DNA from: Macrostomum lignano
Lineage: Eukaryota
Assembly: GCA_002269645.1 (NCBI GenBank)
Contig: NIVC01000114.1
Span: 496,001-560,000, forward strand
Reading direction: 5' to 3'
Length of the DNA: 64,000 nucleotides
Part shown: positions 32,407 to 64,000 of the stretch, one piece after another
How positions within the stretch are numbered: the first letter of the stretch is position 1
How the letters are laid out: each line of letters begins with the position of its first letter
Translations under genes and position numbers: made by a program
Notes under the pieces: generated by a model
The model's database searches: none
Told to the model about the DNA's origin: nothing
Seen by the model: only the letters and a program-made list of their open reading frames with translations

Positions 32407-35400
32407 TCATGTGGATGCGTGATGCTGCTGCTCAGCAAGCTCTAAAAGCTTGTCAAGTTTCGACTCCATGTCTTTTATTCGACGCCTTTGTCGCGTCATT
32501 CGCTCTTCGAGTTTTGTCAATTTTTCAACACTTTCATTTCTTCGTTCATTTAGCTCCTCCAGCAATGTTTGAATTTGGCGGTTCTCCTGCGTTTCTTGGG
32601 TGAGATCGTACTCCGGCGTTGCAGTTCGTTCCGAATGATCCATTTCTCTACTTTTCTGCTTACTGTCATTCGGCGAATCGTGTCTGTGCTGCCTGTCCTC
32701 TTCTTTTCGCTTAAAATTTTCCAGCATTTCCTGCAGCTCCGATTTTAAATCGGAAAGCTCGTTTGCCGTGCGTGCCGTCACCAGGTCAAAGTCGTTTTTG
32801 TTCCACTGGGAGTCGCGAAGCAGTCGATGTCGGCATCTGCGGAACTGAATTGCTTGGAACTGGAGAAATCGCAGGTAATCTGCGGGGTAGCGCTTTTCGT
32901 CCATCCACCACTTTGCATAATCATCCTGAAAGCGTATTAAGGGGTAGAAAAAATTTAAAACTCAATGAAACCTGACGTAAAAAACGTAGCAAATGGAGCG
33001 ATGCAAAACTTACCTCAAATTGTTTATAGTCAGGGTGAGTTTCAAAGTCACATGTCGCTAAGCTGCTCACGTCGTTTTTGCAACAGTATTTGCAAATTTT
33101 CTTGTTTATGAAGCAAATTAAGCTTAAAGTGTGCTCCAGAAAAGAAAAGGGAGGAGGAAGCGTTGTCATTTTCTTGTACTCCTGTAGCACCTGAAAGTAC
33201 TTTTTTCTCCAGATGCCGATGGCCACGCCGTACATTTGGGTGACTCGCAAATTGAAGAGCGCGATCAGCAGGTTCATCATCACCACATTCACCAGGCCCA
33301 GGAAAATGAATATTAGCAGTTGATAAAACCACTCATGGCCTGGTTTGATAGCGACTTTTCCTAACTTTGTGCTGTCTGGAGAAGAACTGAACTCGATCTG
33401 GTCGAAGTTGTTAAACAGCAAGTTAAACGGCAGGGTGGCAGTTTGAACAAACACTTCCCATCCATAGTACGGATTGTCAACGTCAGCTTTAGGAGCCCAA
33501 GTAAAAGAAAACAGCAAGCAGGTAAAAAAGACTCCAAAAGAGCAGAATATTACCATCAGTATCAGCAGAAATGGTAGCAAGTCAAAAAATATTAAATTCC
33601 CAAGCATGCTTATCATGGGTCCGACACTATAAAATTTCCCAAGAAACGATACAGATCGAAAACAGAAAAGTGCGTATGATGTTCCAAGAATCATCTGACT
33701 TGGATAGGCGTCTTCCGACTTAAAACCTTTAGAGTAATAAAAGTACCTTGTGCCCAGTCCGAAGAGTAGCAACGAAAGGGCAGCGATATCGAGCATATTC
33801 TGCCAGTCTCTGACGTATGGGTTAACCCACTTCACGCGCTTACCTAAGATTACTAAAGCTTTCTTTCCTTTTAATCGTTTTATTTCCCGCAACTCTTGCA
33901 GGAGGAACGAAAAAAAGTACGCCACAAGAACTGCATCCACAGGACCCATCCAGAAAGTTTTCTGAAAATTTATAACGTACCAGCCAAAGAAAGCAAGAAA
34001 CACAATAAAGGTGAATATTTGGCTCAAGAATTTTGCTTTTGGAGAGTTTAGTTTCGAAAATTTTGACTGGCTGGTGAAAAATCTTTTGGAGGCGCTGCAT
34101 AAAAGACAGTTTCCACAACATCCATGTTCCTTTGAGCAAGAGGAGATGGGTTCTCTCCACTCTACTTTCGTCAGATAATAGATGCAGTCGGTTGCAAAAA
34201 GATCCGAGCAATCGGCTTCCTTCACAAGGTCAAGTACGCTGCCGTAATTTATTCTCTCACTTCCATCAGAGACTCGGTATGGAAACTTAGGCCCCAAAAA
34301 TTCGCTGTACTTTTTCATCGATTTTTCTTCGTTGGTCAGAGTTAAGGGTGTTAACTCTCCTTTAATGTATTTAAACAGCAGCTCCCTCTCAGCGCCTTCA
34401 GCGTTAATAAACAACTCATTTAATGCGTTCATTGCAATGTTAGTTACTTTCCTCTGCAGTTGAAGCAATTGCTCATGCTTGTCTTCTGACTTAGCTTGCA
34501 ATTCAACTATTTTCGGACCCAGATGGATGAGCAAGCTGAGGCAGCACGGAATCAGCTCAAATTGTCGAGTCAAAATCAGATCCGGCATAATCTCGTCACG
34601 GTAGAAGAAGGCGGCCAAGTCTAAAATTTCCAATTCAAAAGCAGCATCGACGTGAGTCATTTGCTTGAATACGTTCTGTCGAGGGAAACCGTTTCGAAGG
34701 AGATCTTTCTCGTTTTTGAGTGCATCAAGGAAATAGCTAGTGAAAGACTCCCCTGTTTCACGCGTTACCATGTCCAGGCTAAGTGCAGAGCGAAATATTT
34801 TTGTGGAGTCCATTTCTAGCGCTCTGATCAGCACAATTTTATCCCTCATATGTTTCTTTGTGTTTAAGCCGTGGCTTTGCTTTGTGGCTCTATATTCGTT
34901 CATGATGGGCGCCAGAGTCTTTCTAGCGTCTTGCCTGTCAGGAAGCTTTAGCGCCCTATGAGGCGGATCTAGAAGACGGCACATGTCAATTGTTTTGATT
35001 GCTTTGCGAGAATCATATAAATCACGACTAACCGTTAGTGGATCGGTTCTGTCATGTTGCGGACTTTCAGTTTTAATTAAAACCCCCTCCTGAATTTTTT
35101 TGTTATATTCTCTAGCAGCCTGCGCAAGGTCATCAAATTTTCCGTTTTCAAAGGCGAAGTCCACGCAAGTTTGCCCCGAATGAGACGTTGACCAAAGGCT
35201 TAAGCCTTTCGAAAGCAAAAACACAATGTTTTCGCGATGGCCATAAGCGCAGGCAAAATGCAAGCATGTCTCTCCGTGTTCATTGTTCCCGCAAGATGGC
35301 GGATTTACTTTCTTCTTGATCAGTTTTAAGACTTGAGACTCAGGATCTCCAGTTACTTTTGATAATTTTGCGATTATATGTAGCATAGTTGTCGACTGCT

Positions 35401-37192
35401 CGCCCTGTGTAGATACTGACTGCTGAAGGCTGTACTGCCCGGAAAACGTGTGAATAACGTGGGCACCAGTCGCTGAATTTACGAGTAGTTTATCGAAGAT
35501 CTTTGTTGCTTTTTTGTCTTTAACTTTACGAAGCAGCTTGCACAGAATTGAAGCATCAAGTTTTGTTGCATGCAGGCAGTTCAGACTGAGGTTGTTTACA
35601 GCTTCAGGATTTACATTGGCTTCATTAACAAGCCACATGAATCGATTAAATATTTGCTGTTCAACTCCATCATAAGTGAGTCTACTCTGCATCAGTGAAT
35701 GCAGTAGTGTATTTCCTGCTCTATCGGTTCGGATGAGCTCATCCTGTGGCATTTTTTTAATCAAAGACTCTACAGTTTCGTGCTGTTGATCGGGCTCAGA
35801 TGGACCCATCGCATCGATTGCCAGGTGAAGTACTGATTGATTTTTGTTGTTTCGCTTGCTTAAAATCGAATGAGCTCCATTCTGCTGCGTTAAACTATAG
35901 TGTTTGATAATTTCATTAAGCACCTCATACTTGTCTTTTCTCTTTGCTGCGATGTGGATAGCTGTGTTTCCGTCTTTGTCGCGGATTAGTAGGCTATCGA
36001 CAGACTTTAGCTCGCCGAGCAGTTTTTTTACAGTTTCGAGTCTACAATTTTCCATAGCGTAATGAAGAACCGTAGATTTGCGCTTGTTTTGATCAAGAAG
36101 GCAATGCTGGTGGTCACCTTCTACCGAGATGCTTTTGTACTGTTGAACTCCAGATTTACTTAAATAGGACAATTTTTTCTGAGGTACAGGCCTTTTTTTA
36201 TGGGCTGGTTCCATAGTTTCTTGCTCTCGAGCATGCTGCAATGCAGCCTTCAGTAGCGCTGCATCTTTGCCTTGGCACTGAGCCATCGCATGCAGATAGG
36301 TGTTTCCCTGACTGTCCTTCTGCTCTAGCAGCTTCGTTAACGACACTTTAGAAGCAGCGTCATCAATGAGTTTCATTGCTGTTTCTTCGCTGTAGTGTTT
36401 CAGGGCCAAATGTAGAACTGTCTCCTTTTTGTCATTATTTGATGCTTCTTTGCTAGTAGAAGATAAACTTATACTATACCACGGTTTTAAGATGCTAATG
36501 GCATCGAAATTATTATTTTTGGCAGCAAAGTGCACTACGGTATAGTTGTCGACGTCTTTTTCTGTAAAGACATCGCTAGTCTTCCCTATGCTATCGAGGA
36601 TCTCCTTGAGAGCTTCCTCGCTTCGGAAATACTGAAGTACATGGTGTAATACAGTTTCTTCTCTGTTATTCTTCCAATTCCAGCAAACTCCAAAAGCATG
36701 GTCCTTCACGGTGAGCACCATTTTGTAGTCATTCGCGTTTTGAGCAGCCCAGTGAGCGCACGTGTCTCCGTTTGAATCTTTGTAGTTTGAGAGGTTAACA
36801 GACTTGATAAGTTTGAAATTTGACCTCCAGGACGGCGGCGAGTGATAGCGAGCAGACAAGTGCAGCGGGGTTATATTGTCCAAGTCACGACTTTGCAGAC
36901 AGGTTGCTCCGAACTTCTGAACTAAAGCTGTCAGCGCGTCTTCTCCATTCTGATGCATGGCTGCAAAGTGAGCTGCCGTCCGACGATTGTCATCTTCTAG
37001 TAATTCTAGCTTTTCGAAGTCTTTAATGATATCAATTACCACCTGAAAGTCGTAACTTTTTGCGTAGAAGAGCAGACCTTTGTTTTGATTATTATCGACC
37101 TCTTCTGCGTCCCAAAAAGTAGGTGAACTTTCAAGCCAGCATTTTTCAACATCCGCAATTTGCTTTACATGTGCTCCAGCCGTTTCAGCCAT
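32407..37192 (-). CDS. Ankyrin-repeat TRP channel with TRPM-like core, paralog 1, 1565 aa
   Basis: Exons 37192-33014 and 32925-32407, with an 88-nt phase-0 intron (GAG|gtaagt...ttcag|GAT). About 14-16 ankyrin motifs (TPLHLSA, TVLHLAL, TAIHIAA, TCLHFACAYG). Six hydrophobic segments with SPKAKF, ELREI, DWQNMLD, VGPMISML and MNLLIALF. TRP-box region IWRKKY..LQEY..LPPPF and a C-terminal coiled coil. Confidence 0.9.
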
Positions 37193-37261: not shown

Positions 37262-39342
37262 TTCTGGGATCTAGGATCTGGGATCTAGGATCTGGGATCT
37301 AGGATCTGGGATCTAGGATCTGGGATCTAGGATCTGGGATCTAGGATCTGGGATCTAGGATCTGGGATCTAGGATCTGGGATCTAGGATCTGGGATCTAG
37401 GATCTGGGATCTAGGATCTGGGATCTAGGATCTGGGATCTAGGATCTGGGATCTAGGATCTGGGATCTAGGATCTGGGATCTAGGATCTGGGATCTAGGA
37501 TCTGGGATCTAGGATCTGGGATCTAGGATCTGGGATCTAGGATCTGGGATCTAGGATCTGGGATCTAGGATCTGGGATCTAGGATCTGGGATCTAGGATC
37601 TGGGATCTAGGATCTGGGATCTAGGATCTGGGATCTAGGATCTGGGATCTAGGATCTGGGATCTAGGATCTGGGATCTAGGATCTGGGATCTAGGATCTG
37701 GGATCTAGGATCTGGGATCTAGGATCTGGGATCTAGGATCTGGGATCTAGGATCTGGGATCTAGGATCTGGGATCTAGGATCTGGGATCTAGGATCTGGG
37801 ATCTAGGATCTGGGATCTAGGATCTGGGATCTAGGATCTGGGATCTAGGATCTGGGATCTAGGATCTGGGATCTAGGATCTGGGATCTAGGATCTGGGAT
37901 CTAGGATCTGGGATCTAGGATCTGGGATCTAGGATCTGGGATCTAGGATCTGGGATCTAGGATCTGGGATCTAGGATCTGGGATCTAGGATCTGGGATCT
38001 AGGATCTGGGATCTAGGATCTGGGATCTAGGATCTGGGATCTAGGATCTGGGATCTAGGATCTGGGATCTAGGATCTGGGATCTAGGATCTGGGATCTAG
38101 GATCTGGGATCTAGGATCTGGGATCTAGGATCTGGGATCTAGGATCTGGGATCTAGGATCTGGGATCTAGGATCTGGGATCTAGGATCTGGGATCTAGGA
38201 TCTGGGATCTAGGATCTGGGATCTAGGATCTGGGATCTAGGATCTGGGATCTAGGATCTGGGATCTAGGATCTGGGATCTAGGATCTGGGATCTAGGATC
38301 TGGGATCTAGGATCTGGGATCTAGGATCTGGGATCTAGGATCTGGGATCTAGGATCTGGGATCTAGGATCTGGGATCTAGGATCTGGGATCTAGGATCTG
38401 GGATCTAGGATCTGGGATCTAGGATCTGGGATCTAGGATCTGGGATCTAGGATCTGGGATCTAGGATCTGGGATCTAGGATCTGGGATCTAGGATCTGGG
38501 ATCTAGGATCTGGGATCTAGGATCTGGGATCTAGGATCTGGGATCTAGGATCTGGGATCTAGGATCTGGGATCTAGGATCTGGGATCTAGGATCTGGGAT
38601 CTAGGATCTGGGATCTAGGATCTGGGATCTAGGATCTGGGATCTAGGATCTGGGATCTAGGATCTGGGATCTAGGATCTGGGATCTAGGATCTGGGATCT
38701 AGGATCTGGGATCTAGGATCTGGGATCTAGGATCTGGGATCTAGGATCTGGGATCTAGGATCTGGGATCTAGGATCTGGGATCTAGGATCTGGGATCTAG
38801 GATCTGGGATCTAGGATCTGGGATCTAGGATCTGGGATCTAGGATCTGGGATCTAGGATCTGGGATCTAGGATCTGGGATCTAGGATCTGGGATCTAGGA
38901 TCTGGGATCTAGGATCTGGGATCTAGGATCTGGGATCTAGGATCTGGGATCTAGGATCTGGGATCTAGGATCTGGGATCTAGGATCTGGGATCTAGGATC
39001 TGGGATCTAGGATCTGGGATCTAGGATCTGGGATCTAGGATCTGGGATCTAGGATCTGGGATCTAGGATCTGGGATCTAGGATCTGGGATCTAGGATCTG
39101 GGATCTAGGATCTGGGATCTAGGATCTGGGATCTAGGATCTGGGATCTAGGATCTGGGATCTAGGATCTGGGATCTAGGATCTGGGATCTAGGATCTGGG
39201 ATCTAGGATCTGGGATCTAGGATCTGGGATCTAGGATCTGGGATCTAGGATCTGGGATCTAGGATCTGGGATCTAGGATCTGGGATCTAGGATCTGGGAT
39301 CTAGGATCTAGGATCTGGAATCTAGGATCTGGGATCTAGGAT
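37262..39342. repeat. Near-perfect 14-bp satellite (GGATCTAGGATCTG)n
   Basis: About 145-150 units that look identical by eye, with variants only at the edges. Lies in the predicted 5'-UTR intron of TRP paralog 1. Confidence 0.98.
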
Positions 39343-39355
39343 GGGATATGGGATG

Positions 39356-42300
39356 TGTTGAAAAAGTAATGTAAATTGTATCTATGCTATTTATAGTAAC
39401 TCTCGTTAGATTCCCCAAGTCTTAGTAGAACTTTCTAGAACGACACTGTATAAGTTTGTCTATGCCTAAAACTAAAGTGATTAAATCAGCCTCTTCTCCT
39501 CTCTTAACTTTCCCCTTTTGCTCGTTGACTAAGAAATATATTCGATCAGCTACACTAATGCGTTTAAAAGCCAACAGGTTATGGGCCCAGCACGCTTCCA
39601 CTGCGCATAAGTGGTAGCTGATTCAGAAGCCTCGCTCAGACGGAAAATAGGCTTGTTCTCGACACGAACTTTCCGAAGAAATGGCGGATGATAAGTTTCA
39701 AGTGGACAAGCTGGGAAGCGGAAACGGGACTACCTGGAAGATTCAGATCAAGTTCTGTCTTATAGCGAGGAAGCTCTGGGGAGTCGTCGACGGTTCCGTA
39801 ATTCTCGCAGAGGATGCTACTCAGGAGCAAGAAAACGAATTTCGAGAGCAGCAACAGAGAGCTGCTGCAGTGATCGTTCTTTCAATCAAGAAAGAGTTAA
39901 TCTATCTAATAACTTCGTGTGGCGAAGATCCACATCGTATGTGGCAAGCTCTCCAACAGCATGCACTTCGAACAAGAATCAACTGCGAATAAGATCTTTT
40001 TGAAGAAACAGCTTTTCCGGCTGCAGATGAGTGAAGGGACCCGCGTACAGGATCATATACGCCATATGAAGGAGCTGACCGACAAACTGGCCTCTATCAA
40101 CGCACCCGTCAGTGAAGAGGACCAAGTGGTCATGCTGCTCAGCAGCCTGCCTGAGAGCTACTCTACCTTGGTTACTGCCTTGGAAGCTCGCGGTGATGAT
40201 TTTACACTGCAGATGGTTCACCAAGCACTCATCAACGAGGAGCAAAAGCGGAGTGAATTAGGTGAGCGAGGGTCTGGTGGTACACAGGAACACAGGGTGA
40301 AGAGTCTGCACTGAAGACCCAAAAAGGCCAAGGTCTGCGACATCGTGTTGTCAAATGTTTCAATTGCGGAAAGATGGGTGATTTTGCCCGAGACTGTCGT
40401 TCAGGAGGAGCGAAAAGGATCGTCAAGGACCACAACGACAAACTTGCACGGTATGTCGCCAAAACAGCCGATGGTGCTGCGACCTGGGACATCGCCGAAA
40501 CCTCGCTTGATGACGATGGACCTAAAAGCAGCTTCAACGAGACATTATTTGTATCGCCCGCGATGACCAGCTCTGACATATGCACCTGGATAATTGACTC
40601 TGGAGCGTCCTGCCACATGACATACTCTAGAGAGCTAGCTCGTACTAGTCAACTACAAGCAGTTTGGACGACCTGAACGGGTCAACCTAGGTGATGGTCG
40701 AACAGTCGAGGCCTGCGGCAGTGGTCAGGTAAAACTCATTATGCTCCTGCCACATGGAAAACGTTTCAAGACAGCTGTAACAGATGTACTTCTAGTGCCT
40801 CAGCTGTCGTGCAATCTGTTTAGTGTTCGAGCAGCAGCAGCAAAGGATAAAGTGATACAGTTCGGTCACTCAAAATGCTGGATTCGCAACAAGGCTGGAC
40901 TACTTGTAGGAAAGGGATCTGTTTGTTAGCAGAATGTACCAGCTTGACTGTAAAGTAAAATTTATGGCGAACGCTGCGGCAGTGGCAACTGCTGATTCAC
41001 CAGACACAAGTGCAACTTTATGGCACCAGCGTCTTGGTCATGTCAACGAACACCAACTAAATCAATTGACCAAAGACCAACTTGTGAGTGGTATCTCTAA
41101 GTTGCAGACTGCATGTGTAGACTTCTGTGAAGGATGTATCGAGGGCAAAATGCACTGCAAGCCTCATAGGTCGATTTCCGAAATCCGCTCTACCGAAAGA
41201 CTACAACTAATTCACAGCGACATATGCGGTCCTATGCAAACAGAGTCATTTGGTGGAAACAAGTACTTCGTCACCTTTATTGATGACTACTCACGCTGCG
41301 TTAAGGTTTTCTTCATGCGACAAAGGTCAGAAGTGCTTGATAAGTTTAAGAAGTTTGAGGCCATGGTTACAACAGAAACAGGACTCAATATCAAAGCACT
41401 GCGAACTGACGGCGGCGGAGAGTATGCATCAAGCCAATTTACAAAATTCCTGGAGCAGAAGGGCATTCGGCATGAGACTACCGTGGCTCATACACCTCAG
41501 CAAAATGGCGTTGCTGAACGGATGAATCGCACTCTCGTTGAATCAGCCCCCACAATGATGGCCCATGCTGGAGTAAGCAACCAGTTCTGGGCAGAAGCAG
41601 TAAACGCCGCAGCTTATGTGCGAAATAGAGTCGTGACGACTGCTCTTACTCCGCAAATGACGCCGTACCAGTGTTGGTATGGGCGCAAGCCCGACGTTAA
41701 GCACTTTCGTGTTTTCGGCTGCGTAGCCTATGCCCACATACCAGATGTGAAGCGAAAGAAGCTAGACAAAAGGGCCGAAAAGCTACGGTTCGTTGGCTAC
41801 AATACGGATGGAAGAAGCTACAGACTGTTTGATGAAAGGTTGAGAAAGACAGTCATCCGCTACGATGTGGTGTTCAACGAGACTGATTTTGGAACCTCAA
41901 AGAAAAGAACAAGAGACAAGGACGCGAGCTGGTTCAACTTGGAACTTGATGAGCCCAATATGACAGAAGAGACACCAGGCAAGAACAGGAACAGTCGGTG
42001 TCGACAGAAACTGATCAGAAGCGATACCCTCAACGTGAAAGGAGAGCCCCTGACCATCTCAAATATGAAGGTGCAAAAATGGCATCTGAAGCCGTACACT
42101 TTGCGTTCAGAATGACCGAAGTTATCGAACCGAAAACGATCGACGAAGCCCTGAAAACTCCGATGGATCCCAACGTAAAATTAGCCAAATACGACGAGGG
42201 CAGCAATCCAGTTGATTCAACAGCTTACCAGTCAATGGTTGGAAGCTTGCTCTATGCAGAAACTGTTACACGTCCAGACATCTCGTATGCAGTGGGAGTT

Positions 42301-43206
42301 GTCTCCAAGTTCAACAACAAACCAAGAGAAATACATCTAACCCCAGTAAAACGAATCTTCCGATACCTAAAGGGAACAATCGACTTTGGCCTAGAGTACA
42401 ACTCTAGTGTAGAGAACTTGATCGGCTATTCTGATGCAGACTGGGCGAGTGACGTAGATGATCGACATTCCACCTCTGGCATCGTGTTTAAGCTATCTGG
42501 TGGCGCTATCAGCCGGCTTAGCAAGAAGCAATCAACCGTCTCACTCTCGACAACGGAAGCTGAGTACGTTGCGCTGAGCTCTGCAGCACAAGAAGCCATG
42601 TGGCTACGGCGGCTACTAAGTGATCTTGAAAGATCAGGATCTGAGCGACCCACTGTGATCTACGAGGACAACCAAGGAACCATTGCTCTTTCTGAGAATT
42701 CTGCTGGAAGCCGACGGACAAAGCACATTGATATCAGACATCACTTCATTCGTGAAGCCGTCAGCAATGGGACTATTCGGGTGGTCTACTGTCCAACTGG
42801 CGATATGGCTGCAGATGCGCTTACTAAGCCGTTACCGAAGGACAAGTTCATGCAACTGCGAACAATGCTTAGAGTTGTTAAAATGTAACAGAGGAGTTTG
42901 AATTTACTGACATCTTAATCGGAACTTTGTGAAAACTGGACAAATTTTTGTAACCGCATACGTGGACAATTTTCATTAAGTGGGAGTGTTGAAAAAGTAA
43001 TGTAAATTGTATCTATGCTATTTATAGTAACTCGTTAGATTCCCTAAGTCTTAGAACTTTCTAGAGCGATACTCTATAAGTTGTCTATGCCTAAAACTAA
43101 AGTGATTAAATCAGCCTCTGGCACCATCTTCTCTTAACTTTCCCCTTTTGCTCGTTGACTGAGAAATATACTCGATCAGCTACACTACTGCGTTTAAAAG
43201 CCAACA
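39356..43206 (+). mobile_element. Ty1/copia LTR retrotransposon, complete ends, non-functional
   Basis: LTRs 39356-39576 and 42987-43206 (TGTTG...CAACA), TSD GGATG, copia-type PBS GGTTATGGGCCCAG, PPT aagtgggag. Gag with zinc knuckle, protease WIIDSGAS, integrase (HSDICGP, FIDDYS, QQNGVAERMNRT) and RNase H (YSDADWA, IYEDNQG, KHIDIRHHF). It has frameshifts and stops, and most of RT is deleted near 42165. Confidence 0.97.
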
Positions 43207-48492: not shown

Positions 48493-51400
48493 TCATTTTG
48501 ATAAGTGATGAGGCTGCTGATTAACAAGAGCCAGTAGCTGGTCCAGCTTCGACTCCATGCCTTTCATTCGCCTCCTTTGTCGATGCATTTTGTCTTCAAT
48601 TTTTTGGTATTGTTCCTTCAGCTCTTTAAGCAGCTTTTGATTGCTGTCGGTATCAGATAATTTTCTGGGCATACGCGGCTCCGGTTCCATGGTACTTGCT
48701 TGGGACAGCGAGTCCTGCTTGCGGTAGCTGCTTTTACTGTGCTGTTTTGCGTCTTCAAGCATCTCCAGCAACTCCGACTTTAAATCCGACAGCTCATTTG
48801 CTGCGTGTGCCTTCACCACGTCAAAATCGTTTCTGTTCCACTGGGTGTCTCGCAGCAGGCGGGAGCGGCACCGACGGAACTGAATGGCCTAGAACTCCAG
48901 GAAACGGTTATATTCTGCAGGGTAGCTTCTTTTGTCCTGCCACCAACAATCCGACGTGTTCGCCTAAAAGTAAAATAAAAAACTTGCAAAGATTTGTTTT
49001 AATTTTATATACAACGGCGGCGAAAATCCAAAAGAGGAAGATAATTAACTCACATTATCGGCGTCGAAATTATTTTCATTGGAAATTGAATTCTTCGCAC
49101 CACAGCCCTTACAACAGTGCGAAAATACGAACTGCAGAATGTTGAAAATGTACTTCAGAAAGCTGAAAGGCGGTGGAATTGTAGTAAGTGTCTGGTACTC
49201 CTGCAGCATCTGAAAGTACCTCTTTCTCCAAATCCCGGTGGCCACGCCATAAATTTGAGTGACTCGCAAGTTGAAGAGCGCGATCAGCAGGTTCATCATA
49301 ACCACATTTACCAGGCCCATGAAAATGAATACTAGCAAATGATAAAACCATTCATAGCCTTCCTTGATGGCAACCTTTCCTAGCTTTGTGCTGTCTGGAG
49401 AATAAGTGAATTCGATCAGGTCGAAGTTGCCGAACAACAAGTTGAACGGCAGGGTGGCAGCCTGAATGAACATTTGCCATCCATTGTACGGATTTCCAAC
49501 GTGAGCTTCAGGATTCCAGGCAAAGGAAAACAACAGACAAGTGAAAAATACGCCAAAGCAACTGAAAATGACAAACAAGATTGTCAAAAATGGCAGCAAG
49601 TCATAAAAAATTAGACTTGACAGCATGTTGATCATTGGTCCGACGGCTTCGAAGTAACTTAGAAGCGAAACTGAGCGAAAGCAGAAAAGAGAAAAGGACG
49701 TGCTCAAAATCATTTGGCTAGGATAGGCGTCCTCCACCTTGAAACCCATCCCATAGTAGAACCACCGTGCGATCAGACCAGCAAGCATTAGCAGAATGGC
49801 CAGTAGGTCAAAAATATTTAGCCAGTCAACCATGTAGGCAGGAACGGACCATACATGTGAACCGATCTTGCAATTTTCTCTTGCTTTGCGTTGTCTCCAG
49901 ATTTCAGTTGCTTCTTGCAAGCCGAAAGAAAGAAGATACGCTACAAGAAGTGCATCAACTTCTGGCAGCGGAAAGCTTCTCTGGAAGTTCAGAATGTACC
50001 AGCCGAAAAATCCAAGGAACACAACGAATGCGACAGTGTGGATCCAGAACTTTGCCTTTGGTGACTCGGGTTTTGAAATTTTCGGCCTGTACGAGAAGCT
50101 GCACAGGCTGGGGCAACAGCTTTGAGAATTCGTTTGCTCCCTTGAACACTCATAAATAGGCTTCCTCCACTCTTCTTTGGTCAAAGAATAGATGCAGTCA
50201 GTGGCAAACAGATCTGGGTTGTCGGCTTGTTTGACAAGGTCAAGCACGCTGCCATATTTTATCTGATCATTGTGTCCATCTGAGACTCGATATGGAAATT
50301 TTGGCCCCGAGGACTTGTTACATTCTGCAGCTGCTCCGTCTTCGCTGCTTAATTGCAGATTTTTCATTTCTCCTCTAATGTACTTGAAGAGCAGCTCGCT
50401 TTCGATGCTGTTAGCGTTAATAAACAGCTCATTCAGCGCGTTCATTGCAATGTTTGTGACTTTCTTCTGCAGTTGAAGCAGCTGCTCATGCTTGCCTTTT
50501 GCCTTGGCTCGCATCTTGATGATTTCGGGACCAAGCTGGATGAGCAAGCTGAGGCAGCACGGAATCAGCTCAAACTGTCGAGTCAGAATCAGATCGGGTA
50601 GGATCTCGTCGCGGTAGAAAAACGCGGCCAAGTCTATCAGTGCCAATTCCGAGATGGCGGCATCAACGTGAGGCATATTCTTGAACATGTTCTGTCGTGA
50701 GAAGGCTTTTCGGATGTCTTCTTCTGTGATCAGGGTTTCGATGAAATATTCTGTAAATTGTGCTTCTGTTGCATTTGTCAGCATGTTTAAGCTAAGAGCA
50801 GCGCGAAATATTTTTTTGGAGTCCATTTCGAGCGCTCTGATCAGAACCATCTTGTCCGTTTTTTGCTTTTTCGTATCAGCGCCCCTTGTAAATTGCTTTT
50901 GTCGCCTTGTAGTTCCATAGTCGTTCGTTATCGACACCAAAGTCGTTCTCGCAGCTTGCCTGTCAGGCAGCGCTAGCGCTCTTTGAGGCGGATCTAGGAG
51001 ACACAATACGTCGACCATTGTGATCTCTTTGTGAGTGGTTGGAACATCAATTAGATCTGAACTCACCTCAGCAGAAGAATTCTGGTCGTTATTGAATCTA
51101 CATGCATCATTGTATCCCCGAACAGCTTGAACAAGGTCGTAGAAATTTCCGTTTTCATAGGCGTAGTCAACGCAAGTCCGTCCTGAATGGGACTCCGACC
51201 AAAGGCTCAGACCACTCCACAGCAGAAAATGAATGTTTTCCTGATGTCCGTAAGCGCAAGCAAAGTGCAAGCATGTCTCTCCATGCTCTGCGTTTTCGCA
51301 AGATTGCGGATTGACTCTCTTCTTGATGAGAATGTCTTTATGAGTTTTTGATACTTTTGCAATCACATCCAGCATTGTCTGCCCGCCTTGAAGACTGCTC

Positions 51401-53202
51401 AACTGCTGTAGATCGTATTGGCCTGAGAAAGTGTGGATGATGTGAGCACCTGTCGCTGAATTAACTAACAGAACCTCAAAGAGCGTTGCTGCTTCTTCTT
51501 TCGACAGCAACTTGCACAGAACTGAAGCATCGAGTTTTGTCGCGTGTAGGCAGTTCAGATTGAGGTTGTTTACAGCTTTCACATCGACTCCCATACTGAC
51601 GAGCAACTTGAATCTATCCAAAATGTGCTGTTCGACTCCATCATAGGTGAGTTGGCTCTGCATCAGCGAATGCAGCAGCGTGTTTCCTGCTTTGTCGACG
51701 AGCTTGAGCTCTTGCTCTTGCTCTTGCTCTGACATCGCTTTTAAGAGATTCTCAATACTGAGCTTTTTAAAATTCTCTTTGGTAGCTTCTGGGTAATTCT
51801 CGGAATCAGCAGAATCGAATACATCGATTGCCAGGTGAAGCACCGATTGATTTTTGTTGTTTCTCTTGCTTATAATCTTGACTAATTGTCTCTCCATTTT
51901 AGTTTCAAATTTTTCAATTAGAAGATTGAACATTTTGGCTTTGTCCTTTCTTTTAGCAGCAATGTGGAGAATTGTGTTGCCGGCTTTGTCGGCAATCAAA
52001 AGGTGGCGAAACTTCTTTATTTTAGCAAGAAGTTCCTTAACAGTTTCCAACTGACAATTTTCAACAGCGTAGTGAAGAACAGTGGATTTGCGCTTGTTTT
52101 GGGCAAGCAAATAGCTGGATTCGTCTGCAAACTTTGCAGATTGAATTCCTGGCAAATCTGTGGATAAAAAACCAGGAGCTTTACTCATGTCTTGCTTTCG
52201 AGGACGTAATCTTTGTGCCTGAACTTGGCGTGCCTCCAAATCTTGGTTCTGGAAAGATTGCTTCTGACTCTGCCTTGACGCAACTTCTACAGCTTTTAGG
52301 AGCACTGCATCTCTTCCTTGGCACTGAGCCAGTACGTGCAGAGAGGTGTTGCCCTGATTGTCTCTCAATTCGCACCAATGAGGCGGTAAATAATACTGCT
52401 CAAGCAGCCTCTTCGCCAACTCCTCGCTACAATGCATCAGTGCCAAGTGTAGAACTGTTTCCTTCTTTCTGTTCGTTGATACTAACCAATTGTTTTGTCT
52501 TTTCATCCATTTCTCTTGCACATATTCGATAGCATCTATTTTGCTTTTGGCTGCAAAGTGTGCTGCCGTATTTCCCGCCGCATCTTTTTCACCAAGGATA
52601 CCACTCGTCTTTGCAATGCAATCTAGAATATTTTTGAGAACGTTTCTGTCTTGGCAATACTGAAGTACGTGATGAAATACAGTTTCATGTCCATTATTTC
52701 TCAACTTCCAGCAAAGTCCGGAAGCCTGGTTATTTACGGTTAGCACCATTGTACAATCTTTTGAGTTTTGAGCAGCCCAGTGGGCGCACGTGTTGCCGTT
52801 GGAGTCTCTCAGTTGATATAAACGGACCGATGGGACGCCTTGAAAGTTTTTCTCCCAAGACTGAGCCGAATGATAGCGGGCTGACAAGTGCAAAGGAGTT
52901 ATTTTGTCAACGTCAGGACTCACAAGACAGGCCATTCCAAACCTCTGAACAATTTCAGCGAGTGCCTCTTCTCCATCTTGATGCATGGCTGCATAGTGAG
53001 CGCCAGTTCTAAGATTGTCATCCATCAGGAGTTGCAGATCCGTACTCTCTTCACTTAAAATTTTACGGACCTTGATAAAGTCATACTTTCTAGCGACAAG
53101 GAGCAACTCTTTGCTCGGATTGTCGTCTACCTGTTCTTCAGTGGCACTTTCGAGCCAACAAAGGTCCCCGTGTGTGCTTTTCTTGTAGTCAGCTTCCGGC
53201 AT
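48493..53202 (-). CDS. Ankyrin-repeat TRP channel with TRPM-like core, paralog 2; premature TAG in last exon (1407 aa to the TAG, 1539 aa if read through or corrected)
   Basis: Exons 53202-49054 and 48963-48493, with a 90-nt phase-0 intron. Colinear with paralog 1. In-frame TAG at 48891-48889 (RFLEF*AIQFRRCR) where paralogs 1 and 3 have Gln. Confidence 0.85.
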
Positions 53203-53292
53203 TCCGAGAAGCTGTGTATACCGTTGAGCAGAAGTGCAGGCCTGAAAATGCACAGAATAAAAAACAGGTTGCTTGTTTATTTTCAACAGCTA

Positions 53293-58565: not shown

Positions 58566-60533
58566 CAGTCATGGCCACGGGAAGGAACTGATTTCCCGCG
58601 GGATTTCCACAGGTCATTCCCGCGGGAAACACATTTGATTGGCTCGCTCCACCCACCCCCACCGAGACGCGACCCTCTGTTGTGTCACCCTATTATCACC
58701 CTATTATAGCGCTTGGGGGCACAGTTGGAGTTACAATCCCAGGAATTCAGAACACAATATTTTTTAACTTGCAGACAATGAGACTTCACTGCGGCAATCA
58801 GAATATGCCTTCATCAAGATGCAGCGATGGAAGCAGATTTTGTCCGAGCGAGCACGGCGGCAGCGTGACCAAGACGAACCGACTAGGGGATTTCTCAGTA
58901 TTGGCACTCAGAGTGACAACACTGAACTGCAAGAGCCGTCTGTGAAGAAAAGAAAAGTGGGCGTGACCTCCAGCGACGGGCCATCTGCAACTCAGCGGGC
59001 AGCTAACAAGATAAAAAAACTACGGCATCAGAAGCCAAAAGCAACTGTATTGCGCCGAATTCCTGCAGCTGCCACAGCCGCAACTGAGCCTTCGAGATCC
59101 GCCGCTGCTGATCCAGCTGTTCAACCATTACTTTCACTTAGTGCTAATCACGGAGAGGCCGCCTTTCAGAAGTTGCTGGAAGGAATCGATAAAGTGGTTC
59201 AACTGCATCAAAGCAGCAAATCAAGTCAGAATTCCTTGATCAGCGAAACTGTGTGCTCAGAACTGGCAATAATGAAGGCCGATATTAGTGAGCTCAAGCG
59301 CTCTGTATCTTCGATTGAGCTACACCTAACGCAGATTCTTCAAGCTCTCGAGAAGCCTCCTGTGATGCCATCATACATGCCAAAAAGCCCTGGAAACGCT
59401 GCTGCGCTCTCCACGGGTGCTCCGGTAGCCACTCCAACTCCAAGGCGGCTGAACGGACTCACACATGTTGCAACTACACCTGCAGGCTCGCTGTCAGCTG
59501 GACGGGGCACACCGAAGTCGCTGCAGATAGTAGGCATTGACTACCGCTGCAAGGCACTCTCACAGTTTGATAGCTTTCACGATCTCGTGACTCCAGTTGA
59601 ACTTGACGACCTGACACCTGCCGATCTGCATGCTGTGAAAGTTAAATCTGACTCCGCTGGATCGTTTGCAGCTCAACTGTCACGATTAGCAATTCCTGGT
59701 TACGAAAGGTACAAACCGACAGTTGGACAGCCTCGGCTTCAAGGAAAGCAAAGTTATCCAATCTTCATTCTGCAGCAGATAACGTCAATCACTCTGCAGC
59801 ACTTTCCAACTGCGCGGAAGGATGAAATCAGTGCAGCGATTAATCAAGAGGCGAGAGATCTCTTGAAGCAAGCCAAGAATTGCAACAGCTGCACTTTCTG
59901 TCTGGGCAGGACTCGAAGAAGCGAGAAACATGTATTTGAATGACCTGTTGATTGAAAATGTGCTTCAATCTCACTGACCATGTATACAAAAGGCAGTAAT
60001 ATACCTTATAGGTCCTCTTTTTAGTGGTTATACAGGTATGTAATTACGTTACATGTATGTAATTAATACGCAGTACAAGACTATACGCACATACGCACTA
60101 GAAGTGTTCTGCGCACAGCAATTATTGATACACCTAACTTTTCTGCTATTGATTTGCATGAGTTTTTTCACTAAAAACATGCGCAGTATATCTTGCTTTG
60201 TGGTCTCCTTGAGATGCACTCCAGATGCCATAGTTCACTTTACGCTCGTAATTGAAAACTATAAGATCTTGAAAGAGCAAAATTTTAACTGTTTCATGTA
60301 ATTAGTATATAGTCTAGATTATTGAAAATGACTCACAACTAGCATTGATGATTTCAAAACTATCAGTATACACCCCAACTGCCAGCAAAGCCTTCTCATT
60401 CGCTTAAGACCCCTTTTCATCCAGCGGGAAAGGGTTCGGGCAAAGGGAGAGCTGTAGCAAATAGAAAGCCTTTCCCGCGGGATTCCCGTGGGAGCACCCG
60501 CGGGAAATTAGAGCCTTCCCGTGGCCGGTACTG
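58566..60533. mobile_element. Putative Tc1/mariner-type TIR cassette without transposase, carrying a BEN-domain ORF
   Basis: TA-CAGT...ACTG-TA ends. About 64-bp imperfect TIRs (31 of the first 37 nt identical), each with two CCCGCGGG palindromes. Confidence 0.6.
58819..59943 (+). CDS. BEN-solo-like protein (basic NLS, coiled coil, C-terminal BEN domain), 374 aa
   Basis: Uninterrupted ORF. VKKRKV; heptad segment ELAIMKADISELKRSVSSIELHLTQILQALE; C-terminal SDSAGSFAAQLSRLAIP...GKQSYPIFILQQI....HFP....EISAAINQEAR aligns by eye with BEND3-type BEN repeats. An upstream in-frame acceptor ttgcag (~58774) may extend the N-terminus. Confidence 0.75.
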   Translation: MQRWKQILSERARRQRDQDEPTRGFLSIGTQSDNTELQEPSVKKRKVGVTSSDGPSATQRAANKIKKLRHQKPKATVLRRIPAAATAATEPSRSAAADPAVQPLLSLSANHGEAAFQKLLEGIDKVVQLHQSSKSSQNSLISETVCSELAIMKADISELKRSVSSIELHLTQILQALEKPPVMPSYMPKSPGNAAALSTGAPVATPTPRRLNGLTHVATTPAGSLSAGRGTPKSLQIVGIDYRCKALSQFDSFHDLVTPVELDDLTPADLHAVKVKSDSAGSFAAQLSRLAIPGYERYKPTVGQPRLQGKQSYPIFILQQITSITLQHFPTARKDEISAAINQEARDLLKQAKNCNSCTFCLGRTRRSEKHVFE

Positions 60534-60974
60534 TACACCCTGCTGGACCTCACGGTCGTCGAAAAATGTACTAGCCAGAAGGAAATTACCCAGGTTGAAG
60601 GACTGGGGAGGCATGCTTTTGCCTTGTCTATCCACCGAAAACTAAACCAAATGAAAGCAAAAGCAGGTTGTTGCACCAGTATATCTAACGTCTGACAACT
60701 TTAGGAGCGCCCAATTATGCCTCGATTCGTGCCTGAAAGGCTAATCAGGGTGTCAAACTGGATTTCAGTAGGTGAAACTCAGTCTACAGCATGAAATTAA
60801 AAAAACTTCCATCATTCAATCATCCAGTTTCTTCACACTAGCTGGATGCATGCTGTCCATCTGCCGTTAGCATTCCAGTCCAAGATAGTGTCTGAGGACC
60901 CATTTTTCCTGGCCTCTGACACTTTCTCCGGTTCAGTAGTTGCCGCGTAGGTTGCAAGTGTTAAGGAGAAAACC

Positions 60975-61775
60975 CCTGGTGCTACAGTCCCTGTTGCTAA
61001 AGCCCCTGGTGCTAAAGTCCCTGTTGCTAAAGCCTCTGGTGCGAAAGCCCCTGTTGCTAAAGCCTCTGGTGCTAAATCCTCTGGTGCTAAAGCCCCTGGT
61101 GCTAAAGCCCCTGGTGCTAAAGCGCCTGGTGCTAAAGCCTCTGGTGCGAAAGCCCCTGGTGCTAAAGCGTCTGGTGCTAAATCCCCTGGTGATAAAGCCC
61201 CTGGTGCTAAAGCCCCTGGTGCTAAAGCCCCTGGTGCTAAAGCCTCTGGTGCGAAAGCCCCTGGTGCTAAAGCGTCTGGTGCTAAAGCCCCTGGTGCTAA
61301 AGCCCCTGGTGCTAAAGCCCCTGGTGCTAAAGCCCCTGGTGCTAAAGCCATTGGTGCTAAAGCCCCTGGTGCTAAAGCCCCTGGTGCTAAAGCCATTGGT
61401 GCTAAAGCCTCTGGTGCTAAAGCCCCTGGTGCTAAAGCCCCTGGTGCTAAAGCCTCTGGTGCGAAAGCCCCTGGTGCTAAAGCGTCTGGTGCTAAATCCC
61501 CTGGTGCTAAAGCCCCTGGTGCTAAAGCCCCTGGTGCTAAAGCCCCTGGTGCTAAAGCCATTGGTGCTAAAGCCCCTGGTGCTAAAGCCCCTGGTGCTAA
61601 AGCCATTGGTGCTAAAGCCTCTGGTGCTAAAGCCCCTGGTGCTAAAGCCCCTGGTGCTAAAGCCCCTGGTGCTAAAGCCCCTGATGCTAAAGCCCCTGGT
61701 GCTAAAGCCCCTGGTGCTAAAACCCCTGGTGCTAAAGCCCCTGGTGCTAAATCCCCTGGTGCTAAAGCCCCTGCT
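60975..61775. repeat. 15-bp minisatellite
   Basis: Unit gctaaagcccctggt, about 50 copies; open in five frames (LAPGA, GFSTR, KPLVL, AKAPG). Confidence 0.95.
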
Positions 61776-63270
61776 GCTGGCACCCGCACCCAAACAAAAT
61801 TCTTGTGGCACCCCTAGCTGAAATACACGAGCATCTTTATTTGATAATGCAAAAAATTTTTTCTCTTTTTACGAGTTAATTAGCCGGATTGTCACAAGCA
61901 GGAGGCGAAGACAAACAGAAAGAGATGAAATAACGCAAAAAGCAGCTAGCCGTAACTAAGCTGTTTTACTTCGGTTAGTTTAAATCGATTAAAATCGATT
62001 AGACGGTTTATTGCCCTTAAATAATATTTGTTTATTAAGAGGGCAGCAAAGGTACTGAATCAAATAAACAGACACTAAAAAATCAGACAGTACCCTAGAA
62101 AACAAGAGCCAGTGTAGACCATATTCTAGAAAGTGGAACAGATCAGTAATCGGTGATTATCTGCATAGCAATACATCTCGACAAAATCAACCTGAGATGT
62201 TGGGAACTTTTGAACAATTTGCAGCTGCAAGTACTCGAAGTAAGTAAAAATGAAAAAAATCATTGGATTAGCAGAAGAATAAAAAATTTAGATATATACA
62301 TCGTTTCTTATCAACTCCTGGTTGATTTTGATTTCTTCAGGAAAAAGAAATTTTAAGATAATATGGCGTTGTAAAAAATAAAAGCGTATAATAATGGGAG
62401 CAATATCGAAGGGATTGTACTGTTTTAATAGTAAAAAAGCACAAAATTTCATTTTAGTGAATTGGCTATGACGAACGCGGCATGAGCCATTTTACGAGTC
62501 GTAAATAATAGTCGTATCATATACGTAAGTAGATAGACGCAAAAATCAAAATACCGTGAAGCATAGGATACAAAATCTTAACTTCCATGCAAGCACATGT
62601 CCATGGCTAATTTCTGCGCTTTGGTAACTGGGGAGCAATTCGTAGATATAATGAGCATCAATCAAAAAAGCAAAGGGTAATCCGTAGGTCTTAATAAAGG
62701 TCGTAGTTAAGAAGATAAACTTGACACAAAGAAAAATCGTAAATTACTAAGACGACACTTTTGGTAAAAAAATTCTGAAATCTATCGCATACGAGCGTAC
62801 CTAAATACAAGCAGCTCATTTTAGTACATTGGATAAAATAAGTTAAATATGTGCTGTTAATCTGCGCAGGTTAAAGAGTGCAAATAAATTAGCAATGTTA
62901 AAAACAAGGCCACTGCTTTATCCCCCACCCGCCCTATCTTGTGAACCGTCACGGAAATCAATATTTTTGCTTCAATGCGCTAAAAAATACCGCCAAAAAT
63001 GAGTGCTAACAACATCCATTCCCAAACTTATGTTCAAATTTAGTCATGTAGAATTTTGCCTTTGTCCCCCCACCATAAATCTATGGCGATATCCATAGTC
63101 GCTTGTACTTCTAATTATGAGGCGATTCTTACGACTTCAACGTTTGGGATCTATTTGAAATAGGCTTAAAATTTGAGTTATGGCTTTAACATAATGGCAT
63201 TTCTAGAAAATAAAAAAAGTTTTTAATAGCCAAACTGGTCAAATTAGGCCGCGTGATCAGTTAAAAAGAG

Positions 63271-64000
63271 CTACTGCTGCTGACCCGAATCCATTGTAGG
63301 TGGACTAAGTTGTCCCCGAACTTCGACTGCACGGTCAGGCCTTACTAGGGCAAGCAGCTGTTCCAATTTTTTATCGATATCATCTATCCGCTGCTTGAGG
63401 TTTTCCAAGTCGTCACTCTTATCTGCCGACTTATGAGCACTTTCATGCTCATGCTTGCCATGCTGCTTCAGGTTATCCAGCATTTCCTGCACCTCTAATT
63501 TAAAATCCGCCAGCTCGTTGCCCGTGTGCGCCTTCACGACGTCGAAATCGTTTCTGTTCCACTGCGTGTCGCGCAGCAGGCGGGAGCGACAACGGCGAAA
63601 CTGAGTCGCTTGGAACGCCAAAAACCTGGTGTAATCAGCGGGGTAACTTTTCTTGTCCAGCCACCATCTCTTCGTTTTGTCGTTCTAAAAAAACAGAAAG
63701 GTAGCCGTAGATTTTCTTCAATGTTTGAGAAATTTATGAAGCGAAATCTGATGAAACTTACCATATCATCTTCGTTCATATTACCAGAACCATTGTTTGA
63801 ATTGCTGTCAGCAATTACTTTATTCTTCTTGCGATTGCAACATTTACTGTAAACGAATGTCGGAAAATTGAAGAAAAAGTACACCAAAAACGAAAATGGT
63901 GGCGGAAAAAGAGACATCTCTTGGTACTCTTGCAGCATCTCAAATGATCTCTTTCTCCAGATCCCGATAGCCACGCCGTACATTTGGGTGACTCGCAAAT
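63271..64000 (-). CDS. Ankyrin/TRPM-like TRP channel, paralog 3, 3' end only
   Basis: Exons >64000-63762 (RVTQMYGVAIGIWRKR..LQEY..FPPPF) and 63684-63271 (WWLDKKSYPADYTRFLAFQATQFRRCR...coiled coil). 77-nt phase-0 intron at the same position as in paralogs 1 and 2. Confidence 0.9.

Follow-up and report, generated by a model that had tools for sequence, protein, structure and literature searches.

Tandem ankyrin-bearing TRPM-like channel genes in the flatworm Macrostomum lignano

The window analysed here is a stretch of 64,000 nucleotides from Macrostomum lignano (contig NIVC01000114.1). Its minus strand contains a tandem cluster of ion channel genes, which combine a long ankyrin array with the transmembrane core of a TRP channel. 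To which TRP family do these genes belong, and is their architecture a new one? A first-pass annotation had described at least three colinear paralogues. The tandem cluster is there, but only two two-exon genes (A and B) are complete; the third one (C) is represented by S6, the TRP box and exon 2. The tandem arrangement is present twice in the M. lignano genome, as homeologous blocks.

All features are on the minus strand, with positions counted along the window. Gene A (37192..32407) is complete and codes for 1565 amino acids in two exons; once spliced, it is 100% identical to P0001, the M. lignano protein PAA BOX15_Mlig002051g1. Exon 1 (33014..37192, aa 1-1393) contains the ankyrin array, a linker, S1-S6, the TRP helix and LPPPF, and is followed by a GT donor at 33013. 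Exon 2 (32407..32925, aa 1394-1565 and the stop codon) contains a conserved WW..YPADY..FLQFQAIQFRRCR motif and a heptad or coiled-coil region. Gene B (53202..48493) has the same architecture and is also complete in the window. Its exon 1 (49054..53202, aa 1-1383) starts with an ATG at 53202, has a GT donor read at its end and shows 56% identity with gene A. Its exon 2 (48493..48963) has a normal stop at 48495..48493. An in-frame TAG is found at 48891..48889 (codon 1408), where the homeologue has CAG; it precedes the coiled coil, so that this region is lost. Only the last ~0.7 kb of gene C lie inside the window, so that any ankyrin array would lie beyond the window end. The end of exon 1 (63762..64000) contains the end of S6 and the TRP box IWRKRSFEMLQEY (63998..63762) and FPPPF, and the gene continues past the window end; exon 2 (63271..63684) has an intact C-terminal region with its stop codon, 100% identical to the last 137 amino acids of P0007.

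A single short GT-AG intron interrupts each gene directly after the post-TRP region: 88 nt in gene A (32926..33013), 90 nt in gene B (48964..49053) and 77 nt in gene C (63685..63761). The splice sites and the exon 2 motif are common to the three genes and to an unrelated metagenome contig. The long open reading frames are found at 32921..37192 (1423 aa) and 49045..53286: Reading frames of 4.2 kb at ~42% GC cannot have arisen by chance. A copia-type retroelement is located between genes A and B.

The proteins begin with an ankyrin solenoid. About 14-16 repeats had been proposed; the long array is confirmed by Pfam and by an AlphaFold model, with 16-17 repeats in each complete protein (genes A and B). 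In gene A, the solenoid (aa ~30-701, 35090..37105) has 16-17 helix-pair repeats in two blocks, separated by a disordered loop (aa 331-361). The model of aa 1-745 has a pLDDT of 82.6, and Pfam detects ankyrin families only (Ank_2, Ank_4, Ank) in the N-terminal 700 amino acids. The SLOG/MHR1-2 domain (Pfam LSDAT_euk) gives no Pfam match in gene A at E<=0.1, and no Nudix domain is found in it by Pfam. A phmmer search with the N-terminal 800 amino acids of a TRPM3-like protein gives no match in genes A, B or their paralogues. TRPS channels are defined by SLOG and Nudix domains and have no ankyrins (PMC7306681). We have rejected an assignment to TRPS, since Pfam finds neither domain and ankyrins are present.

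Such a solenoid in front of a six-helix TRP channel is also found in TRPN (NompC) and TRPA1. The best fold matches of the gene A ankyrin model are ankyrin-1, AnkB, NompC and fly TRPA1 (Foldseek); for the last two, the modelled repeats can be superposed on the solenoid of the channel. These genes might then be divergent TRPN or TRPA genes, whose transmembrane core resembles TRPM only superficially. The number of repeats, near that of TRPA1, agrees with this reading, and NompC is the top PDB sequence match of the ankyrin region. Nevertheless, NompC has 29 repeats, and neither the transmembrane core nor the linker is TRPN- or TRPA-like, as detailed below, which makes such an origin extremely improbable.

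The transmembrane core of gene A (aa 1051-1350, 33143..34042) is modelled by AlphaFold with a pLDDT of 80-95, as expected from the S1-S6 and TRP box described previously. The helix limits in this model are S1 1051-1074, S2 1083-1107, S3 1130-1154, S4 1159-1184 and S5 1191-1227, then a pore helix (1243-1259) and S6 with the TRP helix (1283-1341), followed by LPPPF. All the motifs quoted in the first-pass annotation (DLAAFFYRDEI, NIAMNALNELF, YGSVLDLVKEAD.SDLFATDCI and IW.K.Y..LQEY..LPPPF) are found in the translations. Pfam Ion_trans gives no match in gene A. In phmmer searches against the PDB, however, TRPM3 is detected with E values of 1e-16 and ~6e-15 and nvTRPM2 with ~6e-15, compared to 3e-3 for the NompC transmembrane region. 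When the core alone is used, 67 sequences are found at E<=10; the 60 matches listed are all TRPM1-8, with no TRPA chain among them. The same is true of the fold: Foldseek gives nothing but TRPM among its 50 best matches, in near full-length alignments (665-840 of 779 columns). Among the matches listed, canonical TRPM channels are thus the only solved structures which resemble this core in sequence and fold. With a family HMM, TRPM-type cores reach 117-160 bits, compared to 64 bits for P0010, the NompC orthologue. TRPA was rejected because of the TRP helix with its W, present in the window family, and the lack of TRPA among the 60 PDB matches listed. TRPN was rejected because of the number of repeats (16-17, compared to ~29), the 64 bits of the NompC core and a linker comparison with an E value of 0.39.

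This linker joins the solenoid to the core. In gene A (aa ~726-1040, 34073..35017) it includes the motifs RQFELIP, NIAMNALNELF and SVLDLVKEADCSDLFATDCI..EW, and is modelled as helices with a pLDDT of ~80-94. It had been described as MHR4-like, a likeness which holds in an indirect way. A direct hhalign comparison of the window family linker with canonical TRPM MHR4 is not significant (E 0.07 over 36 columns). On the other hand, the linker matches the pre-S1 regions of flatworm ankyrin-bearing TRPM-like proteins (P 93%, E 2.7e-7), which in turn match canonical TRPM MHR3/4 (E 8.7e-20). From these profiles we consider the linker to be homologous to TRPM MHR3/4, only through the intermediate flatworm sequences. 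No similarity to the NompC linker is found (the E value of 0.39 given above). The Foldseek alignments to TRPM also span the linker, but they are not fully independent, as the AlphaFold input alignment contained TRPMs. Pfam PF25508 (TRPM2-like, MHR3/4) gives no match in gene A; it is found together with ankyrins and Ion_trans in a M. lignano relative, P0058.

The domain order is therefore 16-17 ankyrin repeats, MHR4-like linker, S1-S4 voltage-sensor-like domain, S5-pore-S6, TRP helix and heptad C-terminus, and both core and linker show TRPM affinity. The chimeric architecture proposed by the first-pass annotation is real: A long ankyrin array is found without SLOG/MHR1-2, in front of an MHR4-like linker and a TRPM-like core. 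Canonical TRPM1-8 (alpha and beta clades) share with these genes the W of the TRP helix, LPPPF and a C-terminal heptad region, but have a SLOG/LSDAT domain in the place of the long array.

The idea that this architecture is novel has to be abandoned, as it has already been catalogued in TRPM_MCLZ of parasitic flatworms, a member of a "TRPM-like" clade with N-terminal ankyrin repeats and without SLOG/MHR1-2 (PMC10788528, PMC11731825, PMC12861061). In Schistosoma mansoni this channel is Smp_333650, the meclonazepam target, with >60 orthologues; it has been functionally expressed, as an ankyrin-bearing TRPM-like channel which generates Ca2+ signals (PMC10788528, PMC11731825, PMC12861061). Like the window genes, TRPM_MCLZ has N-terminal ankyrin or ankyrin-like repeats, lacks SLOG/MHR1-2 and Nudix, and is confined to flatworms. 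Both have an MHR4-like pre-S1 region with RQFD(I/L)P and ..DL...A......W motifs, TRPM-like S1-S6, a TRP helix followed by LPPPF, and few exons (three in TRPM_MCLZ, two in the window genes).

The differences are also clear. The ankyrin region of the window family has ~16 repeats in 700 aa, compared to ~250 aa in TRPM_MCLZ orthologues such as Dicrocoelium P0086; the number of repeats is roughly double in the window branch. Identity over linker and transmembrane core is ~20%, linker and pore filter are divergent, and the TRP box is IWRKKYF instead of (H/L)W(M/L)A.RY. TRPM_MCLZ is a single gene in schistosomes, the window family is greatly expanded in Macrostomum. The TRPM_MCLZ pocket has conserved H827 and H831 in S1 and R943 and H/Y/F946 in S4, with H831 invariant in 63 orthologues (PMC12861061). 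We have compared it using the orthologues P0086, P0192 and P0181 as proxies for the S. mansoni sequence. In gene A, H827 and H831 are replaced by Q and F, and the H946 position by S; only R943 and the S2 Glu remain unchanged. Since the S1 histidines and H946 are missing, the meclonazepam pocket is not conserved. The window genes were rejected as TRPM_MCLZ orthologues: The pocket histidines are replaced and the family forms a separate clade (98.5% bootstrap), with no orthologue of TRPM_MCLZ in it.

Other flatworm proteins combine ankyrins with TRPM modules. M. lignano P0058, P0074, P0077 and P0093 have ankyrins, MHR3/4 and the transmembrane core. P0214 and P0084, a Clonorchis "TRPM2", have ankyrins, SLOG, MHR and the transmembrane core. 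Both groups belong with the window genes to the general TRPM-like superfamily and share with them the N-terminal ankyrins and a post-TRP FL.(F/Y)QA motif, but they have only ~5-7 ankyrin repeats, and PF25508 can still be detected by Pfam, unlike in gene A; P0214 also retains SLOG. They form clades separate from the window family, with bootstraps of 95.5% and 84.5%.

These values come from a neighbor-joining tree of 119 transmembrane cores, with a single TRPN sequence as outgroup. The window subfamily has a 99% bootstrap and the long-ankyrin family as a whole 98.5%. This family is lineage-expanded, as had been suggested: It is nearly confined to Macrostomum and comprises 17 or more clusters when grouped at 50% identity. 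Deep nodes are another matter. All ankyrin-bearing sequences without SLOG fall into one group, from which SLOG-bearing ones are absent, with a bootstrap of 46%, and the window family is sister to the TRPM_MCLZ type at 26%. The low support of these nodes could also fit an independent and ancient TRP lineage, sister to TRPM or to TRPM and TRPS, which kept its ancestral ankyrins and never had SLOG. All other group-1 TRP families have ankyrins (PMC7306681), HMMs of ankyrin-type and SLOG-type TRPM give the window cores about the same score, and the MHR4 signal is very weak in the direct comparison. We consider this unlikely. All the named ankyrin-bearing TRPM-like sequences found are from flatworms, which fits better with a lineage-specific origin, and MHR3/4 (PF25508) and the post-TRP motifs are common to the family and TRPM-type proteins. 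In addition, P0214 has both an N-terminal ankyrin block and SLOG, which offers a simple route from ANK-SLOG-MHR to ANK-MHR. The window genes are very probably tandem TRPM-like channel genes of a TRPM-derived lineage which lost SLOG/MHR1-2 and has an N-terminal ankyrin solenoid, with TRPM_MCLZ as its characterised member. Within this already described architecture, the window family represents a branch which is new and expanded.

A wider proposal can be made, though we would rather bet against it: Flatworm ankyrin-bearing TRPM-like channels would be a distinct TRP subfamily with an ankyrin array in place of the SLOG module, and the long-ankyrin family a large radiation of sensory receptors, with array length varying between copies. 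Three clades with good support make it up: the TRPM_MCLZ type, the short-ankyrin type of Macrostomum and the window family. The source of the array could be an N-terminal ankyrin block, as still found beside SLOG in some flatworm TRPMs, or the cryptic ankyrin repeats in MHR3. TRPM would then be a lineage which had regained its ankyrin repeats, and the published view of a simple ankyrin loss before the TRPM-TRPS split would need qualification.

As members of a separate Macrostomum branch of the flatworm "TRPM-like" lineage, the tandem duplicates would code for subunits of tetrameric cation channels. The C-terminal coiled coil would hold four subunits together, as it does in TRPM channels. The coiled coil noted earlier agrees with a significant heptad periodicity in gene A (aa 1495-1560, 32425..32622), a value reached in 0/2000 shuffles; Pfam TRPM_tetra gives no match in this gene. 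During gating, S6 would be coupled both to the S1-S4 cavity and to the TRP helix. We take the cytosolic Ca2+ site of TRPM2/4/5/8 to consist of S2 E..Q, S3 N..D and the TRP-helix E. The core alignment of the window family has E..E/D/N, N..D and E at these positions, with the S2 E and S3 N..D in common, which makes Ca2+ modulation likely. Meclonazepam, praziquantel and menthol act in the S1-S4 cavity of related channels; by likeness to them, this cavity may take small-molecule or lipid ligands. The ankyrin arm might provide a surface for docking or tethering, or act as a conformational spring. The role of these channels is probably sensory or neuromuscular, and the extent to which the family has expanded in this free-living worm suggests that paralogues are tuned to different stimuli of either kind.

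The selectivity filter is F-(G/N/S/T)-N-F-D, compared to F/Y-G-(Q/E) in canonical TRPM; in gene A, N takes the place of the glycine. With this residue in gene A and the stop codon in gene B, either copy may fail to give a working pore or tetramer. The array might even be a decaying remnant without channel function, its redundant homeologues drifting to pseudogenes after the recent M. lignano genome duplication. Besides these two changes, the homeologue of gene A has lost eight ankyrin repeats by a 1080-bp deletion, and the intervening copia-type element would also fit. We find such a decay quite improbable, as the 4.7-kb reading frame of gene A is intact, gene B is intact except for one codon, and the 1080-bp deletion does not shift the reading frame. 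All three genes and the metagenome contig keep the splice sites and the exon 2 motif. Finally, gene B differs from its homeologue (the P0002 gene) by 1.6% at the DNA level, with a dN/dS of 0.23: Purifying selection acts on this gene.

The window, eukaryotic DNA of the free-living flatworm Macrostomum lignano, contains three tandem channel genes on the minus strand, A, B and C. An ORF of 1423 amino acids (32921..37192) shares 98-100% identity with GenBank protein BOX15_Mlig002051g1, and its 4.2-kb size rules out a chance ORF. Read from the DNA, gene A has two exons (37192..33014 and 32925..32407), separated by an 88 nt GT-AG intron (33013..32926). Their spliced product has 1565 amino acids and agrees with the GenBank protein in every residue. 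Gene B, 56% identical to gene A, has the same kind of structure: exon 1 (53202..49054) starts with the ATG at 53202 and is followed by a 90 nt intron and an exon 2 which starts at 48963. Gene C is represented by the end of exon 1 (63998..63762), which codes for the end of S6, the TRP box and FPPPF, a 77 nt intron and exon 2 (63684..63271). No further copies are found in the window by tblastn. In the first-pass annotation, three or more paralogues had been described, each having 14-16 ankyrins; these correspond to two complete genes and one tail, because only the end of gene C lies in the window.

Pfam detects only ankyrin families in the gene A protein, at amino acids ~60-690, and the channels have no SLOG/MHR1-2 domain. 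In an AlphaFold model of amino acids 1-745 (mean pLDDT 82.6, pTM 0.76), the ankyrin arm has 16-17 helix-pair repeats, arranged in two blocks with a disordered loop (amino acids 331-361) between them. The closest folds are 24-repeat ankyrins, NompC and the 17-repeat fly TRPA1. A second model, of amino acids 621-1399 (pLDDT 79, pTM 0.75), presents an all-helical linker (amino acids ~734-1013), then a pre-S1 helix, S1-S4, S5, a pore helix and a long S6-TRP helix. At the start of exon 2 the three genes have a motif in common, WW..YPA(D/E)Y..FL.FQA.QFRRCR, and the end of this exon has a hydrophobic periodicity of 3.5 residues, above 2000/2000 shuffles, which is consistent with a C-terminal coiled coil.

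When the whole gene A protein is compared with the PDB, NompC is the top match, through the ankyrins only. The TM core (amino acids 1046-1367) matches TRPM3, TRPM2, TRPM7, TRPM4 and TRPM5 at 1e-16 to 1e-12, and the NompC TM region does no better than 3e-3 in the same comparison. A search with only the TM core matches 67 distinct PDB sequences at E<=10, and the 60 of them that are listed are all TRPM1-8. An HMM of the family TM cores gives 117-160 bits to TRPM-type cores, versus 64 bits to the NompC orthologue P0010. The best 50 Foldseek matches of the model which includes linker and TM core are all TRPM4, TRPM3, TRPM2 or TRPM5, with alignments of 665-840/779 columns and a query TM-score of ~0.5. 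A profile comparison of the NompC linker with the linker of the window family found no similarity. The PDB matches of the TM core, the HMM scores and this null result are the grounds on which a TRPN or TRPA affiliation is rejected. Membership of the window family in the TRPM superfamily is solid, and the tandem array of chimeras initially read from the DNA, with an ankyrin arm joined to a TRPM-matching TM core, is real.

The linker had also been described as MHR4-like. Compared directly, profile to profile, with the pre-S1 region of 40 SLOG-bearing TRPMs, it only reaches E 0.07, below significance, with the expected segment aligned (SVLDLVKEADCSDLFATDCI..W). On the other hand, flatworm ankyrin-bearing TRPM-like proteins have a pre-S1 region which the linker does match (P 93%, E 2.7e-7, 126 columns), and this region matches canonical MHR3/4 (P 99.2%, E 8.7e-20, 237 columns). 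One of these ankyrin-bearing proteins, P0058 from M. lignano, has the Pfam domains TRPM2-like (PF25508), ANK and Ion_trans. Since the direct comparison falls short and the flatworm proteins act as a bridge, MHR4 homology of the linker is supported transitively only.

Three word-indexed searches, with the full protein, a linker and TM profile and a mixed flatworm profile, returned only matches in M. lignano or matches to ankyrins alone. It took an exhaustive HMMER search with the linker and TM profile, covering 1.84 billion representatives, to reach other flatworms and TRPMs; this search gave 1147 matches, 37 of them below 1e-30. All matches spanning both linker and TM core are from M. lignano, except for one contig filed under a 'Kangiellaceae bacterium' MAG (JAZBNS010000602.1 of GCA_036350755.1, 1-5106), which encodes a family member of 1537 amino acids. 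Its GT-AG intron (~4616-4690) is in the conserved position and is followed by the conserved exon 2 motif, as in the window genes; the contig is therefore eukaryotic and was mis-binned with bacterial sequence. The next tier contains ankyrin-bearing SLOG-less proteins of Opisthorchis, Dicrocoelium and Schistocephalus, together with several M. lignano clusters; ordinary TRPMs come after them.

When 119 TM cores are compared by neighbour joining (294 columns and 200 bootstraps, with NompC as the outgroup), the window subfamily receives 99% support and the whole family with the long ankyrin array, 17 representatives at 50% identity, 98.5%. A lineage-expanded, divergent subfamily was suggested at first reading; the family is distinct, and strongly expanded in Macrostomum. 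A Macrostomum group with short ankyrin regions has 95.5% support, and the parasite group 68%. All ankyrin-bearing SLOG-less cores appear together, with no SLOG-bearing sequence among them, but with 46% support, and HMM scoring of ankyrin-type against SLOG-type TRPMs does not discriminate: The window TM cores are no closer to the ankyrin type. For these two reasons the exact place of the family within the TRPM superfamily is not solid. Some flatworm TRPMs, P0214 of M. lignano and P0084 and P0211 of Clonorchis and Opisthorchis, have an N-terminal ankyrin block before the Pfam domains SLOG, TRPM2-like and Ion_trans. They are possible intermediates between canonical TRPMs and the SLOG-less ankyrin types.

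This is not a new kind of channel, because the architecture has already been published for parasitic flatworms. The schistosome meclonazepam target TRPM_MCLZ (Smp_333650), with 1380 amino acids and three exons, has N-terminal ankyrin-like repeats and no MHR1/2-SLOG; its clade adjoins the TRPMs, its authors proposed the name 'TRPM-like', 63 orthologues are described in trematodes, monogeneans and cestodes, and functional expression has been achieved (PMC10788528, PMC11731825, PMC12861061). According to Himmel et al., TRPM and TRPS lack ankyrins, whose loss probably preceded the split between the two (PMC7306681); the Marchant group has already noted that the flatworm ankyrin-bearing TRPM-like clade is an exception.

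The parasite ankyrin-bearing proteins found in our searches are TRPM_MCLZ orthologues. The key S4 position is Tyr in the Dicrocoelium protein P0086 (1378 amino acids) and Phe in the Schistocephalus orthologue, in agreement with the reports for Plagiorchiida and cestodes, respectively. The Opisthorchis viverrini protein annotated 'ankyrin repeat protein' (P0042/P0181) has two tandem TM cores. These correspond to the duplicated terminal exon, 3a/3b, reported for TRPM_MCLZ of Opisthorchis and Clonorchis, which makes this database entry a fused model. The window genes, on the other hand, are not TRPM_MCLZ orthologues. In a comparison made through its orthologues, TRPM_MCLZ has two S1 histidines where the window genes have Q and F, with S at the S4 position, and the ankyrin region covers ~700 amino acids in the window genes versus roughly 250 in the TRPM_MCLZ type. 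A search of the literature on Macrostomum TRP channels gave a mention of TRPV only and no paper describing the window channels, and the window gene identifiers were not found in the literature. The novelty lies in the family itself, which is distinct, strongly expanded in Macrostomum and marked by a doubled ankyrin arm, by its divergent linker and by its unusual filter.

In S2, the Glu of the TRPM E-x-x-Q motif is retained in the window family, whereas the Q position is occupied by E, D, N or K; the N-x-x-D of S3 and the Glu of (L/V)xEY in the TRP helix are also kept. In TRPM2/4/5/8, these S2, S3 and TRP-helix positions bind cytosolic Ca2+. P0099, considered as zebrafish TRPM5 for site numbering, is a different protein, so the putative Ca2+ site has been assigned by motif alignment and established knowledge. 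Conservation extends to the S4 Arg and the TRP Trp. The pore filter is LLF(G/N/S/T)NFD in the window subfamily, unlike the (F/Y)G(Q/E) of TRPMs, and FG(I/L)F(E) in others. The gene A pore (LPFNLLFNNFDQIE, ~33430-33460) has Asn, FNNF instead of FGNF, at the position of the selectivity-filter glycine present in its paralogues and in all TRPMs. The residue is S or T in other close paralogues, so this site is unusually variable within the subfamily. Mechanism and modality of the window genes would be those suggested by analogy with their relatives.

A 24.7 kb region on another contig of the same assembly (NIVC01000045.1:134125-158835) is colinear with 34389-64000 of the window, with 97-99% identity. 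It shares with the window all three channel genes and the copia-type retroelement; therefore, it is a homeologous block. Gene B and its homeologue differ in 73 of 4708 bases (dS 0.033, dN 0.008, dN/dS 0.23), and gene B, apart from one TAG codon, is under purifying selection. This TAG, the sole in-frame stop, is codon 1408 (48889-48891, minus strand), CAG in the homeologue (98% identical). It would remove the last 131 amino acids, including the heptad/coiled-coil region; a recent loss, an allele or a base error might each account for it. The gene A homeologue has an in-frame deletion of 1080 bp (window 36168..35089; amino acids 342-701), which eliminates the second ankyrin block, about eight repeats.

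TRPM is the one TRP group defined in textbooks by its lack of ankyrins, and the window family documents a domain replacement within this group, with SLOG lost and ankyrins present. Two anti-schistosomal drugs have TRPM_MCLZ and TRPM_PZQ as their targets. M. lignano, free-living and amenable to transgenesis, has dozens of relatives, among them the tandem-array family with its doubled ankyrin arm, and offers a route to what the ankyrin-bearing TRPM-like channels sense and to the role of the ankyrin arm. The gain is one of classification and scope, with no new principle, because the proteins were already public as 'hypothetical' and the architecture was published.

Other features are found in the window. 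A Ty1/copia-type LTR retroelement (~38878-43884, plus strand) lies between genes A and B, with gag (39919-40314), a segment that holds gag-pre-integrase, integrase and SH3 (40934-42115), and another pol ORF (41998-42888). Its reading frames are fragmented, and it is 98.5% identical to the copy in the homeologous block. Minisatellite arrays (291-1339, 3555-3941, 4947-5969, 10371-10867, 12046-12533, 13541-14069, 16338-17488 and 60833-61821) contain long repetitive ORFs in several frames, with units such as GGEW.., GALAP.. or SYRRGG.., and also cause strong local GC-skew excursions. Upstream of the cluster, on the minus strand, unrelated genes contribute a protein kinase exon (14103-15224; Pfam Pkinase, 3e-41) and a FAM91 N-terminal domain exon (1717-2400; Pfam, 1e-64). 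Between genes B and C, an ORF of 374 amino acids (58819-59943, plus strand) has no Pfam match, and its DNA is conserved in the homeologous block.
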